This document shows positions 4,152 to 63,996 of a stretch of 64,000 nt of DNA, piece by piece (positions within the stretch are counted from its first letter, which is position 1; every line of letters starts with the position of its first letter). The notes beneath the pieces are model-generated. The model did not search any database. It saw nothing but the letters and a program-made list of their open reading frames with translations, and was not told where the DNA came from. The DNA is taken from the sequence record NC_048053.1; one strand, 5' to 3'. Made by a program: the position numbers and the translations under genes.

Positions 4152-5969
4152 ATGTCTACTATTTCTTTGTCGCAGAAGAGTCAAGAGATTGCCTCTCTGT
4201 CGGCATCTGTTGCGCAAAAGGAAGCTGCAAAGTTTCTTTTTGGCAAAAACTATTTGAAGATCCTTGAGACAATCGAGAAACTTGCGAAGTCGAAAGTGGT
4301 TGTATCGCCTCAATTGCGTGGTCTGCTTCTGATGATGCGCGATGCGGAAGACGCAGAGATCATTAAGTTTCAGAAATCCGTGCCGGGTAAAGCAACAATC
4401 AAAGCCGCGCAGGATCTGCTTAAAGCAAAAACTCTGGATGCAAGTTTGAAAGCATTTCGAGGGATTAAGGTTGCGAAGAAATGGACGCAAGAGGCAAGCC
4501 AAACAAAAGACGTGACGAAGCCCGTTCCGAAAGTTAAACCTGCTCGCCAGCCTAAACCTGCGCCGGAAGAAAAACCTGTTCTGAAAGTTGGTGAACAAGT
4601 TAAGTCTGCACCGAAAATTGGAACGCCTCAAATTCCCGATCTCACCAATAAACCAAATCCGGATACCAAATTCGGCAAACTGGTTAATGACACCGTTCGC
4701 GTTATCGTGAATGCTGCATACCTGATCGATGATTCGATGATCATGCTGACCAAAAACGGCGGCTATCAAATTCGTATCTATCCAAAAGTTACTGACAACC
4801 CGCGTGAAGATCTCGCTTATGGGATCATTGTTCATAAAGACGAAACTTTCAGTTACGGTGTTTATGACAAAAACGGTATCGGTAAAACTGTTGGCAGTGA
4901 TACCAACATGCGCAAAGCAGTGTCGCATATTATTCACGAAATCGAAACCAACAACCCGACCAATGCTAACGCGTTTCAGGTTGCTTTCGGCAAAGGCAAA
5001 GCAAAAGACGATCATAAATCTGAAACCGTTCTGGTTGATGAAATTTCTGATGTGTTGCCGCAAACTCTGGATAAAAAGTTTGAGAACTATACCGATCACG
5101 TTAAAGCGATTGGCGATAACCTCAAACGAAATATTCCCGGCCTGAAAACTAAATTGCTTCCTCGCGGTCTGGAATTGATCATGGGGCAGGATGAATTCGG
5201 CACGCTGAAATTCGGTGATGGGCGTTGGTTACTCACGCCATATAAACGCGTACACAAGACGGTTGATATCGGGCAGAACTATGACGCAGGCTACGTGATT
5301 CAAACACTGAAAGATATGTTTGAGGCTGATCGTAAACGCGCTGCGCGTAAAGAAAAAACTCATGGCGTAACAGATAACCTGATGTTGAAATACAAACAGG
5401 ATATGATGAGCGCACTGGCAAGTAGCGATCTGAAACTGTTCGACGAAGTTCATAACGGAAAAGAAACCAACGACGATAATCTTGTTTGGGATATGTCGTA
5501 TCGTATGCCCGAAACTGGAATCTCGTTGCCCGTTTCTATTCGCTATAATCGCCGTCGTGGTTACAGCTTTGGATTGAATGGCGCACCTTACACGATGATT
5601 CAACCGGGCGTAGCTCAGAACATTGGTAAGTTTGTTCGCGCTCTCAAATCCACTATTGCCGCTGTTGTGAAAAGTAGCAGTAAAAAATATGCGCTTGTTG
5701 ATGGGCGTCCGTTTACTCCGGGAACTGGCGTGCTGCACGCGAAAGCGAAAGCGGTTGATATTCGCTGCACGCAAACAGCAATTTTCCTTACTGGTAATCC
5801 TGCGGCGGTTTCGACTTTGTTCGACGGAAGTTTCAAACAGCCTCTGCTGGATTCTAAAGGCACGGCAACCGTGAACCGTGCGGCACCGAACAACTATCGC
5901 ATTCTCTGCAATAATGAGGAAGTGCGTGATCAAATCCTGATGGGTGCAAACATCATCCGGAAACTGTAA
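4152..5969 (+). CDS. large basic hypothetical protein (605 aa) with K/P-rich linker
   Basis: long ORF, gagga RBS, VTKPVPKVKPARQPKPAPEEKP linker. Confidence 0.8.
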   Translation: MSTISLSQKSQEIASLSASVAQKEAAKFLFGKNYLKILETIEKLAKSKVVVSPQLRGLLLMMRDAEDAEIIKFQKSVPGKATIKAAQDLLKAKTLDASLKAFRGIKVAKKWTQEASQTKDVTKPVPKVKPARQPKPAPEEKPVLKVGEQVKSAPKIGTPQIPDLTNKPNPDTKFGKLVNDTVRVIVNAAYLIDDSMIMLTKNGGYQIRIYPKVTDNPREDLAYGIIVHKDETFSYGVYDKNGIGKTVGSDTNMRKAVSHIIHEIETNNPTNANAFQVAFGKGKAKDDHKSETVLVDEISDVLPQTLDKKFENYTDHVKAIGDNLKRNIPGLKTKLLPRGLELIMGQDEFGTLKFGDGRWLLTPYKRVHKTVDIGQNYDAGYVIQTLKDMFEADRKRAARKEKTHGVTDNLMLKYKQDMMSALASSDLKLFDEVHNGKETNDDNLVWDMSYRMPETGISLPVSIRYNRRRGYSFGLNGAPYTMIQPGVAQNIGKFVRALKSTIAAVVKSSSKKYALVDGRPFTPGTGVLHAKAKAVDIRCTQTAIFLTGNPAAVSTLFDGSFKQPLLDSKGTATVNRAAPNNYRILCNNEEVRDQILMGANIIRKL

Positions 5970-53744: not shown

Positions 53745-53887
53745 TTCGGTTCCGGCCTGAATCTGTAAAGTAACGTTGAAGGACAGAATCTGTAAATCAA
53801 TTCTGTCAGACAGAAACTGTAAACAGTGAATGTCAAACGCCACTGATTAATTTCGGTGGCGTCAGTTAAAAACATTTTTCTCTTAAT

Positions 53888-58072: not shown

Positions 58073-59754
58073 TGGCAACCATTAAGCCGAAGAAAAACGC
58101 GAAGCCAGAAAAAACGAAAGTTAAACCTGCTGCGAAATCGAAAGCCGTTGCGAAAAAATCAAAAGGCATTGAAGTTGCTGATATCAAGACGGGCAAAAAA
58201 CTCAAGAAGAAAACTAATACTGCAATCAGCACTGTAGTAGAAAGTAAGTATCCGCTCAAAGGACAGAAGCAAGAAAACATTCGCGATGAAGGTTTGGCTG
58301 CTTTTACTGAGCGTGAGTTGCGTAAGTACGGATCTTACGTTGTTGAAGATCGTGCCATTCCAGATTTTCGCGATGGGTTGAAACCTGTTCACCGTGCGAT
58401 CATTTGGGCAATGTCAGATCTCAACCTGTTACCTTCTGGTGGGTATAAAAAGAGTGCGCGTGTTGTTGGTGATGCTCTCGGTAAATATCATCCTCATGGT
58501 GATAGCGCGTGTTATGGCGCAATGGTTACGGTCGCTAACACCGTGCCTCCTGCGGTAGACGGTCAGGGCAATTGGGGTACACCAACTGATCCGTTCGCTG
58601 CGATGCGTTATACCGAAGCAAAACAAAGTCGTTTCACGCAAATGTTTTTGCTGGATAAAAACTATTTGCAAGTTACACCGATGGTAAGCAACTTCTCAAA
58701 CGATATGAAGTTGCCGCTGCATCTTCCTGCGCTGCTGCCTTTCATGCTGTTTGCTGGCACCGTTCCCGCTCCGGCCTATGGTGTGAAGTGTGGGAACCCA
58801 ACGTTCACTTTTGCTAGTGTTGCGCGTGTTGTGATTGATATGCTTAACGGTGTTGAATACGATCACAAAAAACTCGCGAAGACGTTAGTTATTCAGCATG
58901 AGTTTGGTTGTAAAAATATTACTTCCAGTAGCGAAATGTTGAACCTGATGCGAACCGGGCGCGGCAAAGTAACATACGAACCGGAAATGAAAATCGATCT
59001 GAAACGCAAAACGATTGTGATTCAGACTTTCGTTCCGCTCGGTTTCGCGTCGGAAGATGGCATTGAAAAAATGCTGATGAAGTTCTCAACCATTCAGGGC
59101 GTATCAACTGCGCATTCTGTTGGCGGTGAGCGAAACCCGGACGCGGGAACTTATGGTTGTGCTGTTGAAGTTGTTGCTGCGCGTGGCGTCGATGAAGATC
59201 GATTCTACGAAATCGCGCAAGAAGTTCAAAAGCTAGTTACCAAATCTGTTTCGTATATTCTCGGTGTTACTGTTCGTCACGGCGACAAGCCGAACAGCTT
59301 TAAGTATCTCGATTATCTCTCATACTTCAAAGCATGGGTGACGTATCGCAAGAAACTTGAAGTGCGTATGCTGGATTGGTTGATAGCGCGTGCGCAAAAA
59401 GAACTTCACTTACAGGAGGTTTATTTATTCGCGGTAGAGAACAAAGACAAGTTGCTTAAAGCACTGCCTAAAGTTCTGTCCTCGAAGACTCCAGATGAAG
59501 CTCTTGCAAAAGCAATCAAACTCCCGGTTGAAGATGCAAAAATAATTTTGGATCGTCAAGTGCGTAAGTTGGCAACACTTGAAAAAGCCGATCTGGTTGC
59601 GAAGATTAAAGCGTTGAAAGCAGATATCGCAGGCTGGCAGAAAGGGCTGAAAGCTCCGGGCAAGTATGCAGCGAAAGACACCGAAGATCGTGTTGTTCGT
59701 TACTTGAAAAATCCGGATGCTAATAAGCCTAAACTCGGCTACGGAAAACTGTAA
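58072..59754 (+). CDS. parC: type IIA DNA topoisomerase breakage-reunion subunit (ParC/GyrA family), no C-terminal pinwheel
   Basis: [49 protein letters not shown] (catalytic Tyr). Confidence 0.92.
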
Positions 59755-59833
59755 ATACTAATTGGGATCTGTAGACTAGGAATATTCCTAATACTGTAAA
59801 TAATAGTAATTAGGAACTGTAAACAGATCCCTT
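59749..59833 (+). promoter_or_regulatory. cluster of CTGTAAATA motifs inside a long inverted repeat
   Basis: CTGTAAATA at 59749 and 59794, CTGTAAACA at 59817; gggatctgt...acagatccc; palindrome taggaatattccta. Confidence 0.5.
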
Positions 59834-59903: not shown

Positions 59904-61094
59904 ATGAACTCTCCAGTTGTTGCACTACGCAACCGTATTGATGATGTTGTTGAAGCATTAACTCTCATCAAGAATGGCTCCCTGTTGAAGCGCTCCGATG
60001 TTGTCGGTGCGTTGCATGAAGCTGATGTTGAATCAGCAAAGGTTGTCAAAGAGGTGCGTAGTAGTGTCTATAAATCCTATCCTGATGTGCTCGAATGTAA
60101 AAGCGGATTCACTGCCGCGCTTACAACCTGCGTATCGCTGGCGGGAATGCTGAAATCAAAATCAATTTCACGTCCTGCTTTCTTGAAGAAAATTTCTTCG
60201 GTACTCGAAAATCTGCGCGGTATTCGCATCGACGTTGAGCGTGCGTTAACCTATCTGCCGGAAGACGAGAACAGCGATGTAGAAGACCGGGCAATCTCTC
60301 GACGTGAAGCGCGTGAGCGTGCGGCATCGTCAAAAACTTCCCGACTGTTAGAACAAATGCACGCGAAATATTCGCACAAAGTTCCGACCAAACTGAAAGG
60401 CGCGATCTATCTGACCACGCTTCCTCTTATGGCACGGTTTGGAACGTTTTCGATGAATCCGGACAATCTCTCAAAGCTCGGCTTTAAAGTTCACAACGCT
60501 GGCCTGCATTCGGCTCCTAGTTCCGATCTTGGAATCGTGCTAGAAGAACAGCTTGTGATGTTTTTTCGCATGAGCGACGCGCTAGAGAATTCAGAAGAGA
60601 CTTCGAAGAAATTTAAATCAGGCGGCGTAAACAAAGAGCGAACTGATTTGCAGAAACGACGCAATTCAGAACGCCGTGAATTACGTTTGCTTAATCAGAA
60701 TTTGGAGGGTGTGACAAATATCAATCTCAAGAAAGCGATCAATAAGCGAATTGTGAAAACGCAGAAAGCGATTGATGAACTGTCAGCAAAAATTGATAAC
60801 CTAAATGAAAGTGTGAAACAGCACAATTCAACTGCGCGTGTGGTTCGGCAAATGAATAACACCACGGAGATCAGCATACTTAATTACGCTGCGCCTATTT
60901 TGGACAGCTTGAATGCTAAAGCAAGTTCCGACTACGGATTGTTTACGACTAAGCCGTTGTCTGGACTCATGGCTGATAGCGATGTGTTTGCTCTCTGGTT
61001 AATGCCGAAGCCGACGATTAAGATGTTACTCAAACTAACGAACGGGGATACCAAATTGGATACGTGGTTCCTGCCGTGGTCTAATGGCCGCTGA
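59904..61094 (+). CDS. hypothetical protein with coiled coil (396 aa)
   Basis: gagg RBS. Confidence 0.78.
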   Translation: MNSPVVALRNRIDDVVEALTLIKNGSLLKRSDVVGALHEADVESAKVVKEVRSSVYKSYPDVLECKSGFTAALTTCVSLAGMLKSKSISRPAFLKKISSVLENLRGIRIDVERALTYLPEDENSDVEDRAISRREARERAASSKTSRLLEQMHAKYSHKVPTKLKGAIYLTTLPLMARFGTFSMNPDNLSKLGFKVHNAGLHSAPSSDLGIVLEEQLVMFFRMSDALENSEETSKKFKSGGVNKERTDLQKRRNSERRELRLLNQNLEGVTNINLKKAINKRIVKTQKAIDELSAKIDNLNESVKQHNSTARVVRQMNNTTEISILNYAAPILDSLNAKASSDYGLFTTKPLSGLMADSDVFALWLMPKPTIKMLLKLTNGDTKLDTWFLPWSNGR

Positions 61095-61626
61095 AAATAG
61101 ATTGTATGCGAATGAACGTAATGGATTAACGCAATGTTGTATTTGTGGAACGTTCACAAAAGCAATTCATTGGCACCATACGATTCCGCAATCTCTCGGA
61201 GGCAAGGACAGTCTCCAGATTCCGTTGGATGGAAATTGCCACACTGCATTGCACGCGAAAGCGAGTGCAGTTGTAAGCAAGATGCACGGAAAAAGAAAAA
61301 CTCCCGTTGGTGAATTTTGGGATGATCCGAAAGCTGAACAAGCCGCCGAAGTATGGTTAAAAATCCTTGTCGATGCGATGCTTGTTCCACCTGTCGATCC
61401 TTCATCCAAAATGATTTTGCTCCCGTCTATTCAGGTGGACGTGGAGACAAGACACGCACTTGAATTGTTGAAGCGTGATACTCCCGGCATAACATCAATG
61501 TCGCAAGTTCTCCGCTTTTGCATAGAAGCAACACTTAAAATTAAGGGTTTGAGAAACGATGAGCAGCAAGAATTTTCGCACAGTAGATCTGAAAGAAATG
61601 GTAAAAAGCACCGTGACTTGTGGTGA
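61084..61626 (+). CDS. HNH-motif protein with possible C-terminal ribbon-helix-helix
   Basis: CCICG..HWHHTIPQSLGG..NCHTALH; IQVDVETRHALELLK..SMSQVLRFCI. Confidence 0.7.
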   Translation: MAAENRLYANERNGLTQCCICGTFTKAIHWHHTIPQSLGGKDSLQIPLDGNCHTALHAKASAVVSKMHGKRKTPVGEFWDDPKAEQAAEVWLKILVDAMLVPPVDPSSKMILLPSIQVDVETRHALELLKRDTPGITSMSQVLRFCIEATLKIKGLRNDEQQEFSHSRSERNGKKHRDLW

Positions 61627-62437
61627 TTGCCGTGGCCTTAATCGTGATGTGCTTATCCCTTCCGCTACGAAGCCTTGCGAAAGTCTCGGCAAGCTGGAAG
61701 ACAGTAAGATGTGCAAACATTTTCGCACGAACACTTACGATCTGCGGCGACTGATGGAAGAGGGCGGGGATGGTCTGGTCGCTCTGTTCCAACTGTTCGG
61801 AAATATGGAAGAGAAAGATCTGCGTATCATTTCTATGATGTTGTTGCGTGAGGCGAATACACGTAAGCATGGCGTGAAAATGGGCCAGCCTGTTTTCATT
61901 CGTTATCGTGGGCGTGAATCTCGCAACTACCTGAACAATTTTATGGCGGCACGTATTCTGGATATCGACGACAAAGAAATTCGTTTGATTTCTGAAACAG
62001 GCAATATCGTGCTTACTTACCCTAACACCGGATTGGCTGGCCCGTCTGTTTATTCGAAGTCAGAATTTAAAACGCTGGCGAAGAAAATGAAAGCGGAAGG
62101 CAAGATTAACGATCCAGAACGCGAGATCAAAACCGTTAAGAAATATTTGCCAGAAGAAGATGTGAAATTTAAAGTTCCAACTATTCTGGATGGATTCTCT
62201 GTTCCCAACATGGACGAAGTTGTGAAAGGCAAGGGCGGCAAGAAGAAACGTAAGACGAACACTCTCATTGATATCGTAAGCATGATTGATAGTGGTAGTC
62301 TGATGGGCGCTCACGCTGATGACGAAGATGGTGCATTGGAGTTAGGCGAAGACCAATACCAAAGCACAACGAAAACTAAGGTCAAGCCTAAGAAGAAAAA
62401 ACGTAAGGCTGGCCCGATTGAGTTAAGTGATTATTGA
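61559..62437 (+). CDS. hypothetical protein with N-terminal Cys4 zinc site and basic tail
   Basis: TCGDC..KPC..MCKHF. Confidence 0.72.
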   Translation: MSSKNFRTVDLKEMVKSTVTCGDCRGLNRDVLIPSATKPCESLGKLEDSKMCKHFRTNTYDLRRLMEEGGDGLVALFQLFGNMEEKDLRIISMMLLREANTRKHGVKMGQPVFIRYRGRESRNYLNNFMAARILDIDDKEIRLISETGNIVLTYPNTGLAGPSVYSKSEFKTLAKKMKAEGKINDPEREIKTVKKYLPEEDVKFKVPTILDGFSVPNMDEVVKGKGGKKKRKTNTLIDIVSMIDSGSLMGAHADDEDGALELGEDQYQSTTKTKVKPKKKKRKAGPIELSDY

Positions 62438-62483: not shown

Positions 62484-63632
62484 ATGGGGTTATTAGCAGT
62501 GAAACAAGATTCTTTGTCAAAATTTATTGAGACTAAACTTTTAATCAAACGGAATTCTTCTGCGTTTCGCGTTGTGTATGCGGCGACGGTGCGTTACTTA
62601 GCCTGCGGGTTTAAGTCCATCGCTGAGTATCACAGTATTCTGCAAAAGTACGTTGACTTTAATCAGTTTGAGTTCTCCGCTGCCGACTTCCGTATTCAGG
62701 TTGGATCGGTATGCCGTTTTGTCACGAACATTCGTTTTTATGCTTTATCCATTTGTCTTGCAAAGCAGGACAATTTAAAACGCGTTGTGCTTTCGTATAA
62801 AAAGTTTGGTGTGCGTCGCCGTGATGCACAATTAATTTGGAAGTTAATGCTGGCAGATATTCGCTGCCGTAAAATGCTATTGAAGACCGCAAAGCAAAAA
62901 CACAAAACGTTATGTGCTGCGCAAGTCAATCATCATGAATTGCAACTGCGAATGAATCAGATAAATGAACTGACTGAGGTTCTGAATAAAAACATTAAGT
63001 CGCGAGTGAAAAAGCAATTGCGTTGGGTGATGACTGCGCACAACATTACTTGGCAAGATATCGTGTGTGACGTTACGTGTAAACTGATCGTAAGCTACTA
63101 TAACAGCTTGCCGAATGCTTATTCGTTCCAACACCAACTTAACTATCTGCGCCGCTCGTTGGAAAATATAATTCATAACATGAACCATTATTACGCGGCA
63201 GATTGTCGCAAGCGTATGCAAAAATCTGGTGACGGTTTTGAATTGATCGTTATGTCAGACAATCAACTCAATCGCAATGTCGGTTTGGGTGATTCTGAAA
63301 ATGAACGAAGCTATGAAGATCTTGCGGAACCAACATCGGCTCCTGTAGAACAACTGGAAACTAATATCGCTATTGAACGTCTGCTTGCAAAAAATGCAGG
63401 CAAGAAGCGCGGTAAACTTTACAGTGTTGTTCTTGGACGCGATGAACACGGATTCTCTGAATATCTGGCGCACAATAACTTATTAGGAAAACGTCTGAGT
63501 AACGGAACGGAATGGCTCGTAGCTAAACCAATCGCAACCGTGCGTAAGGTGCTGGCGAAGTGGCTTAACGTTTCGGTAGAGGCAGTGGAAAGCGGCCTCA
63601 ATACTCTGAGAACTGCGTTACAGATTGCATGA
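62484..63632 (+). CDS. divergent sigma70-family RNA polymerase sigma factor
   Basis: region-2-like WQDIVCDVTCKL..YLRRSLENIIHN; region-4.2-like VLAKWLNVSVEAVESGLNTLRTAL. Confidence 0.55.
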   Translation: MGLLAVKQDSLSKFIETKLLIKRNSSAFRVVYAATVRYLACGFKSIAEYHSILQKYVDFNQFEFSAADFRIQVGSVCRFVTNIRFYALSICLAKQDNLKRVVLSYKKFGVRRRDAQLIWKLMLADIRCRKMLLKTAKQKHKTLCAAQVNHHELQLRMNQINELTEVLNKNIKSRVKKQLRWVMTAHNITWQDIVCDVTCKLIVSYYNSLPNAYSFQHQLNYLRRSLENIIHNMNHYYAADCRKRMQKSGDGFELIVMSDNQLNRNVGLGDSENERSYEDLAEPTSAPVEQLETNIAIERLLAKNAGKKRGKLYSVVLGRDEHGFSEYLAHNNLLGKRLSNGTEWLVAKPIATVRKVLAKWLNVSVEAVESGLNTLRTALQIA

Positions 63633-63996
63633 GGTTACAATGTATCGTTGTCTTGATTCCGAACTCGAAAAATCTGCTTTTACTTTATTCCCGCGCACGC
63701 TTGACACCGAATATAAACGTGCGTTGTGTTATGTAGTTTTTCATCACGTTAAAAAATCTAATATTGCGCAGGTGAGTCGCCTTGTTCACGATATCCATTC
63801 GAAGTACGCGTACAATCGCGAGGATATCAAAGCGGCGCTCTCTGTTTTAAAAAGTCCTTATGCGTTTCGTGCGGTAGATATGTTCATGGACAGAGATCAG
63901 AAAAATCGTCTCGTCCGTGTAGCTCGCGATGCTAATATTGCAGAGTGGCTGTCGGAAGTAGAAGAAAAATATCCGCACGTAACTTGCATGATGTAG
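63625..63996 (+). CDS. hypothetical protein
   Basis: ORF after sigma-like gene; ATG at 63640 with gagg RBS also plausible. Confidence 0.68.
   Translation: MHEVTMYRCLDSELEKSAFTLFPRTLDTEYKRALCYVVFHHVKKSNIAQVSRLVHDIHSKYAYNREDIKAALSVLKSPYAFRAVDMFMDRDQKNRLVRVARDANIAEWLSEVEEKYPHVTCMM

Follow-up and report, generated by a model that had tools for sequence, protein, structure and literature searches.

A candidate highly divergent sigma-70-like protein with an additional N-terminal domain in the Dickeya jumbo phage vB_DsoM_JA29

Introduction

How does a jumbo phage without a recognisable RNA polymerase (RNAP) reprogramme the enzyme of its host, and does it employ more than one sigma factor to do so? 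The question is raised by gene gp317 from Dickeya phage vB_DsoM_JA29 (JA29), a jumbo myovirus of the genus Salmondvirus. We analysed the final 64 kb of its 253,323 bp genome (record NC_048053.1; this stretch of 64,000 nt is referred to as the window, and its position 1 corresponds to record position 189,324). The open reading frame (ORF) of gp317 is located at 62484..63632 on the + strand of the window, and its product is listed in RefSeq as YP_009811431.1 under the label “hypothetical protein”. A sequence-only reading of the window had taken this product for a highly divergent sigma factor redirecting the host RNAP, most plausibly to promoters of the type CTGTAAATA. We find that gp317 is most likely a very divergent member or an offshoot of the sigma-70 family with an extra N-terminal domain. 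Judged from structure prediction and sequence comparison, the probability that it acts as a sigma factor together with the host core enzyme is about 0.6.

For one relative of gp317 the sigma idea is already present in the literature and was never carried into annotation. The orthologue in Pseudomonas phage PaBG, gp112 (YP_008433444.1; tblastn E 7e-20, approximately 28% identity, same neighboring genes), was put down by Evseev et al. 2020 as a possible, putative sigma factor on the basis of an HHpred match (97.2%, E 0.2), with gp118 being the confident sigma factor of that phage (PMC7412058). Iyer et al. placed PaBG and a further Pseudomonas phage, Lu11, in jumbo-phage subgroup 2.2 and reported that an RNAP is missing from the jumbo phages of group 2, which all encode sigma factors (PMC7824862). 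In agreement with this, Pfam models detected no RNAP catalytic subunit in the JA29 genome. A sigma factor directed at the host RNAP is therefore the natural reading of gp317.

Relationship of gp317 to sigma-70 factors

The reading frame itself is real: starting from the first ATG at 62484 it translates into 382 residues without an internal stop. All peptides singled out in the sequence-only reading are found in the translation, namely WQDIVCDVTCKLIVSYY at residues 189–206, YLRRSLENIIHN at 221–232, the acidic stretch ENERSYEDLAEP...EQLE at 272–292 and VLAKWLNVSVEAVESGLNTLRTAL at 357–380. The GTG at 62499, which is the RefSeq start and yields 377 residues, is the likelier start codon because a GGGG precedes it by 8 nt and the homologues of gp317 begin at the same position. 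Residue numbers given here refer to the 382-residue translation from ATG 62484.

The AlphaFold2 (AF2) model of the whole protein is all-helical with a predicted local distance difference test score (pLDDT) of 74.7. A VIA-align search covering 48,161 PDB representatives returned sigma-like structures: the top six chains for residues ~145–248 are all sigma factors with Z-scores of 8.6–9.9, five of them belonging to the extracytoplasmic function (ECF) group and one to a Mycobacterium tuberculosis initiation complex. In detail these are RpoE (5uxx_C; Z 9.9, 82 residues at 2.3 Å), SigH (Z 9.8), chain F of the M. tuberculosis initiation complex (Z 9.6), ShbA (Z 9.5), SigL (Z 8.6) and SigR (1h3l_B; Z 8.6, 77 of 78 residues aligned). 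Roughly every second row among the top 50 is a sigma factor. Several complete sigma factors cover residues 149–382 with both domains in the right order, and rows restricted to residues 291–382 consist of sigma4 domains only. These are region 4 of SigA (6ono_B; Z 6.7, 64 of 69 residues at 2.3 Å) and domain 4 of sigmaA (4g6d_A; Z 6.2, 61 of 62 residues). A Foldseek search of the PDB with the whole model gave no E-value below 0.4; its non-significant top ranks are mostly sigma factors.

Sequence profiles point to the same family. We aligned the profile of 123 gp317 homologues using hhalign to an ECF profile of 44 sequences, comprising RpoE orthologues and diverse Sigma70_r4_2 matches gathered by genome searches. 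Residues 157–249 of gp317 matched RpoE 19–98 over 80 columns with P = 1.7e-4, whereas reversed controls gave P ≥ 0.067. The register of this match corresponds to regions 2.1–2.4, and the D..E of region 2.1/2.2 is in line. When gp317 was compared with single sigma factors (six E. coli sigmas, JA29 gp222 and PaBG gp118) by hhalign, none matched.

Further matches were found among the homologues. The NCBIfam sigma-70 model TIGR02937 was matched below its threshold by 13 of the 123 homologues (best E 2.6e-6), and in all five homologues examined the match is located in the sigma2-like region. Other sigma models were matched four more times, three of them in a single homologue (P0066), and unrelated NCBIfam models gave a single match each. 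P0066, itself among the homologues matching TIGR02937, aligns to JA29 gp317 end to end (E 3e-23), and a custom ECF hidden Markov model (HMM) matches its residues 153–242 with E 2.2e-5; no reversed sequence was matched. Searching the 123 homologues with Pfam resulted in one Sigma70_r2 (PF04542) match at noise level (E 0.0043). In the ESM Atlas the best named cluster for gp317 scored 0.95 and consists to 100% of Sigma70_r2, and 19 of the 30 matches are Sigma70_r2 clusters.

We counted structure search, profile-profile alignment, transitive HMM matches through the homologues and protein-language-model neighbors as four independent lines. Taken over all four, it is very probable that gp317 carries a domain homologous to sigma2. 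As far as predicted fold and remote homology are concerned, the sigma reading is well supported; as a working sigma factor gp317 is a candidate.

Several observations weigh against this reading. According to the VIA-align guide, matches between helical bundles below a Z-score of about 13 may reflect a common arrangement of helices. None of the curated sigma models of Pfam and NCBIfam matched JA29 gp317 at any reported threshold, and the HMM matches of the homologues all lie under the curated cut-offs (approximately 15–20 bits for TIGR02937 in the members examined, compared to a cut-off of 42.9). Family profiles searched against PDB sequences returned no sigma factor and nothing relevant. For the sigma4-like part, hhalign of the helix-turn-helix (HTH) against region 4.2 gave P = 0.0076. 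The cross-domain control gave 0.013, so that this value is no better than the control and the sequence speaks only marginally for sigma4. Finally, the invariant place of the gene directly 5’ of a small ORF and a DnaB gene also fits a role in replication. The sigma profile check spoke for the sigma2 part of the earlier prediction and left the sigma4 part marginal.

Domain architecture of gp317

All parts of gp317 described in the following are encoded on the + strand. The sigma2-like domain comprises residues ~146–243 (62919..63212) and was delimited by VIA-align, hhalign, the TIGR02937 matches in homologues and the custom ECF HMM. It is equivalent to regions 2.1–2.4 and contains the conserved positions D192, D/E196, YY205–206, P210, H217, N220, N228 and N232. 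It is followed by a linker of residues 244–290 (63213..63353), recognised by low pLDDT, conservation and charge. The start of the linker (residues 244–263) carries a motif of the type KRxR...G.D...SENQ which is among the best-conserved parts of the protein, and a variable acidic stretch comes after it. The acidic linker noticed in the sequence-only reading is therefore present, with an isoelectric point (pI) of 4.1 for residues 244–290. Nowhere in gp317 is conservation higher than in the sigma2-like region and the linker motif next to it.

The putative sigma4-like domain extends over residues 291–382 (63354..63629), as suggested by the VIA-align matches and the hhalign comparison described above. 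It is 92 residues long, of which 61–64 align to sigma4 chains of 62–69 residues. In line with the insertion before region 4.2 that had been proposed, about 30 conserved residues (~321–349; 63444–63530) separate the first pair of helices from the terminal HTH, which comprises residues 350–382 (63531–63629). Within the insertion F324 and L328 are nearly invariant in the family.

The N-terminal domain (residues 1–145; 62484..62918) is family-specific. Modelled alone with AF2 it is predicted to form eight helices in a compact arrangement (pLDDT 89.8, predicted template modelling score 0.84) and it is basic (pI 10.2). In a fold search its best VIA-align match reached Z 5.9 (TrpR/PadR-like, residues 76–145 only), which is below the noise guide, and Foldseek gave no match for the domain at E < 1. 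Likewise hhalign against sigma2 and sigma4 revealed no match and no relation by internal repeat. According to its model, this domain is thus without a known fold among the structures searched. The “long N-terminal extension” of about 170 basic residues described earlier exists, but it is a compact eight-helix domain and not a loose basic tail. The charge is as described for residues 1–170 (30 K+R versus 12 D+E, pI 10.1); the basicity is in part a property of JA29, with a net charge of the N-terminal part of +19 compared to a family median of +8.

The gp317 family and a second sigma factor

gp317 belongs to PHROG 19229 (phrog_19229, E 1e-105), a family of unknown function. A Pfam search of gp317 and its neighbor proteins yielded no sigma match, and gp317 is without any Pfam family. 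Full-length homologues with 45–50% identity are encoded by the Erwinia phages Y3, Yoloswag, Alexandra and the pEa_SNUABM series, by Dickeya phage AD1 and by Yersinia phage fHe-Yen9-02. More remote ones occur in Phage NCTB and the Pseudomonas phages PaBG, Lu11 and HRDY3. An exhaustive profile search resulted in 256 clusters of the family (50% identity) at E ≤ 1e-3, nearly all with proteins of 350–390 residues.

JA29 encodes a second, recognisable sigma-like protein, gp222, which is annotated as RNA polymerase sigma factor. Its gene is located at genome position 186806–187843, approximately 1.5 kb upstream of where the window begins, and is the orthologue of PaBG gp118 (E 1e-58). A copy of CTGTAAATA lies 20 nt upstream of gp222, and the genes for SSB and a RecA/UvsX-like protein follow downstream. 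In the six-frame Pfam scan JA29 gp222 remained below the Sigma70_r2 threshold, and PaBG gp118 is just at the Pfam cut-off for the same model. Both gp317 and gp222 are present in all seven genomes checked. Between JA29 and the Erwinia phages gp222 shows 71% identity compared to 45–50% for gp317. When the kinship of gp317 with gp222 and PaBG gp118 was assessed using hhalign, P-values of 0.69 and 0.22 were obtained. hhalign finds no relation, so that the two JA29 proteins are not recognisable as paralogues.

Operon and conserved gene neighborhood

Upstream of gp317 three genes are located on the + strand: gp314 (59904–61094), gp315 (61084–61626), which overlaps both of its neighbors and shows weak HNH-like matches (E ~0.015), and gp316 (61598–62437), which belongs to PHROG 17701 “DNA topoisomerase” and has no Pfam match. 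A phage-specific topoisomerase I of the tyrosine-recombinase type has been described for PaBG and Lu11 (Iyer et al., PMC7824862), and gp316 may be this enzyme. Downstream, gp318 (63640..63996, + strand) encodes a protein of 118 residues assigned to PHROG 27753 of unknown function, with no family or atlas lead. Its ribosome-binding site overlaps the stop codon of gp317, and gp318 is probably translationally coupled to gp317. It could be a partner of gp317 or a small helicase loader.

The whole block in JA29 reads topo II, gp314, gp315, gp316, gp317, gp318, DnaB helicase (gp001), gp002, terminase. PaBG, Lu11 and two distant metagenome relatives share this order, with an equivalent small ORF behind the sigma-like gene and DnaB next; for the most distant member (P0150) the short contigs stop before DnaB. 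Between 59600 and 64000 we did not observe an excess of sigma70-type promoters or terminators. A search of RNA runs for the stretch showed that only wastewater metagenome contigs contain it. Directly upstream of gp314 three copies of rAAWCTGTAAA(TA) are located at 59749, 59794 and 59817 (59749..59823, + strand), a probable operon promoter region. Each of the 22 related loci, which were collected with an alignment of closer homologues, carries the motif at this place. It is probable that gp314-gp315-gp316-gp317-gp318, possibly including DnaB, form one operon headed by this motif cluster.

The CTGTAAATA motif and its possible readers

CTGTAAATA represents a real signal: 7 copies occur in the window, all on the + strand, compared to 0.35 expected, at positions such as 1763, 5964, 25774, 52340, 53888, 59749 and 59794. 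Genome-wide there are 19 copies, and all are in sense orientation to their transcription block (19:0). For the core CTGTAAA we counted 72 sense and 10 antisense copies. The consensus rAAWCTGTAAATA shows no -35-like element, and sites are concentrated just past gene ends. Judged from sequence, it looks like a compact promoter class with a single element, recalling the late promoter of T4, TATAAATA. The CTGTAAA motif is absent from the syntenic region of PaBG. An assignment of CTGTAAATA to the host as an extended -10 element of sigma70 was rejected on our own reasoning from the consensus, in which TG directly abuts TAAATA so that the usual spacer base is missing.

While the motif is real, the idea that gp317 is the factor reading it found no support, since gp317 and gp222 both lie downstream of motif copies. 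It follows that first transcription from the motif does not depend on either of the two alone; its first use must rely on something already present. With CTGTAAATA 20 nt upstream of its gene and as the better-conserved sigma factor, gp222 is at least an equal candidate. That gp317 specifically reads CTGTAAATA is accordingly doubtful. It is possible that gp317 reads rAAWCTGTAAATA, with no better support than for gp222 reading it, and the two-tier transcription programme outlined in the sequence-only reading is speculation.

Some further properties of the motif sites were noticed. Upstream of a gene trio a tandem array at 53763–53823 contains three copies exactly 27 nt apart; this array and the one at 59749–59823 could represent tandem promoters or iteron-like sites. 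For 5 of the 19 exact copies a terminator-like hairpin with a T run follows within 0–2 nt, compared to 1.3% of random windows (genome positions 14446, 24888, 30882, 195287 and 241663, the last two corresponding to window positions 5964 and 52340). If transcription started a few nucleotides after the motif, part of the 5’ arm of the stem would be missing from the RNA; one may speculate that such a hairpin stops read-through RNAs and spares those started at the motif. In addition, according to our own ORF calls the TAA of CTGTAAA seems to serve the upstream gene as its stop codon in 8 of 28 gene-end copies, for example at genome positions 21887, 171872, 191086 (window 1763), 195287, 215097 and 249072 (window 59749).

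Alternative explanations

A sigma-like fold might serve a purpose other than transcription initiation. One such explanation is that gp317 is a regulator derived from a sigma factor. It might, for example, occupy host core as a decoy or competitor, or act on gp222 or host sigma70 as a partner or in an anti-sigma-like manner, with the N-terminal domain as the active part. Its much eroded sigma features (no curated HMM passed, a large insertion in sigma4), the conserved extra domain of 145 residues without known fold and the co-occurrence with the more canonical and better conserved gp222 in all seven genomes (71% versus 45–50% identity) would all be in line with this. However, conservation is highest in the sigma2-like region and the linker motif, which would be expected under selection for core binding and DNA melting, and both domains are kept in canonical order across the 256 representative clusters, so that we regard such a regulator as unlikely. 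Alternatively, the resemblance could be generic for a helical bundle plus HTH, in which case gp317 would be an ordinary transcription factor of the HTH type or a DNA-binding protein. Its Z-scores of 6–10 are inside the range for which VIA-align gives its warning, from rank 7 on the list also contains helical proteins other than sigma factors (SRI domain, SID1, MCM), and the Foldseek E-values all exceed 0.4. Against this, independent sequence signals name the same family at the same residues, the language-model search agrees and the reversed-sequence controls are clean; a chance resemblance of this kind is highly improbable.

The position of the gene brings in replication. A gene of ~255–290 codons, the sigma-like gene, an ORF of ~118–138 codons overlapping or directly following it, a DnaB_C helicase gene and a gene of ~250 codons are kept in this order in JA29, PaBG, Lu11 and distant metagenome members (E ~1e-13 to 1e-35), with the terminase next where the contig reaches that far. 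Modules composed of initiator, loader and helicase are known from SPP1 (G38P-G39P-G40P) and lambda (O-P). By analogy gp317 might be an origin-binding protein or replisome organiser that reuses a sigma-like fold to bind or melt DNA at the origin, gp318 the helicase loader and gp001 the DnaB-type helicase; the tandem iteron-like arrays at 53763–53823 and 59749–59823 would suit an origin. But Pfam, PHROG, NCBIfam and fold matches above noise offer no initiator family or fold for gp317, and the positive signals all point to sigma factors. Furthermore the motif is distributed genome-wide at gene ends in strictly sense orientation (19:0 for exact copies, 72:10 for the core), which is expected of transcription signals and not of an origin. 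The position of gp317 also does not speak against a sigma factor, since T4 gene 55 likewise sits among replication and recombination genes. An initiator role thus appears quite unlikely. The same applies, somewhat more strongly, to the wider idea that gp317 is part of a replication module, either opening or marking the origin by its DNA-melting sigma2-type domain and its HTH and loading DnaB together with gp318, or tethering host RNAP to the replisome through its N-terminal domain. In the tethering version late transcription would be coupled to replication by a route unlike the clamp-gp33-gp55 route of T4, and in either version the sigma fold would have a previously undescribed use.

Proposed role and comparison with known sigma systems

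The preferred reading remains that of gp317 as a phage sigma factor. Of the earlier proposal that it redirects host RNAP, the sigma2-like domain, the acidic linker and, as a putative domain, the sigma4-like HTH are supported, and the promoter class CTGTAAATA is not. We infer the following mechanism: gp317 would be made along with the replication genes from the operon starting at the CTGTAAATA cluster, its sigma2-like and sigma4-like domains would bind the host RNAP core, and it would steer the polymerase to one class of phage promoters, beside or after gp222.

The clade concerned includes the Dickeya JA phages, the Erwinia phages Y3, Yoloswag and Alexandra, Yersinia phage fHe-Yen9-02, PaBG and Lu11 as well as the 256 metagenome clusters (50% identity). 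Because these phages have no recognisable RNAP, they have to redirect the polymerase of the host. Provided that gp317 works as a sigma factor, they would carry two unrelated sigma-like factors, and the whole temporal programme would be testable by simple in vitro transcription. In this case the N-terminal domain, which is new, the conserved motif in the linker and the sigma4 insertion of gp317 would widen the limits of the sigma-70 family. Its family is well defined and provides a basis for annotating several hundred “hypothetical” phage genes (PHROG 19229), and the fixed place beside DnaB represents a testable link between replication and transcription.

Among known systems gp317 resembles ECF (group 4) sigma factors. 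E. coli RpoE, M. tuberculosis SigH and SigL and S. coelicolor SigR are among the best structural matches to its sigma2-like domain, and the arrangement of sigma2-like domain, linker and putative sigma4-like domain without a sigma3 domain, ending in an HTH at the position of region 4.2, corresponds to that of the ECF group. In contrast to ECF factors, gp317 has an N-terminal domain of 145 residues, an insertion of about 30 residues in sigma4 and a conserved linker motif. With 377–382 residues it is about twice the size of an ECF factor and thus departs from the minimal two-domain plan of ~170–220 residues, and it has no recognisable anti-sigma partner. Within phages, PaBG gp112 is the orthologue with the same neighbors and differs from gp317 by an identity of only ~28% and by the lack of CTGTAAA in the syntenic region. 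gp222 and PaBG gp118 resemble gp317 in that they are divergent sigma-like proteins encoded in the same genomes and in replication or recombination neighborhoods, with gp222, like gp317, downstream of CTGTAAATA, but they are not detectably paralogous to gp317, and gp222 is much better conserved.

The other point of comparison is the T4 late sigma factor gp55 (with gp33 and the gp45 clamp), a phage-encoded, highly divergent sigma2-like protein that reads the compact single-element promoter TATAAATA. VIA-align matched gp317 to 7d7d_F with Z 6.3 over 87 residues, a weaker match than those to ECF sigma factors; this is chain F of the gp45-dependent T4 activation complex, and we take it to be gp55. 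Unlike gp317, which keeps a putative sigma4-like HTH and adds an N-terminal domain, gp55 is without sigma4 and roughly half as large. With this architecture gp317 fits neither the minimal plan of ECF sigma factors nor the sigma2-only type of T4 gp55.

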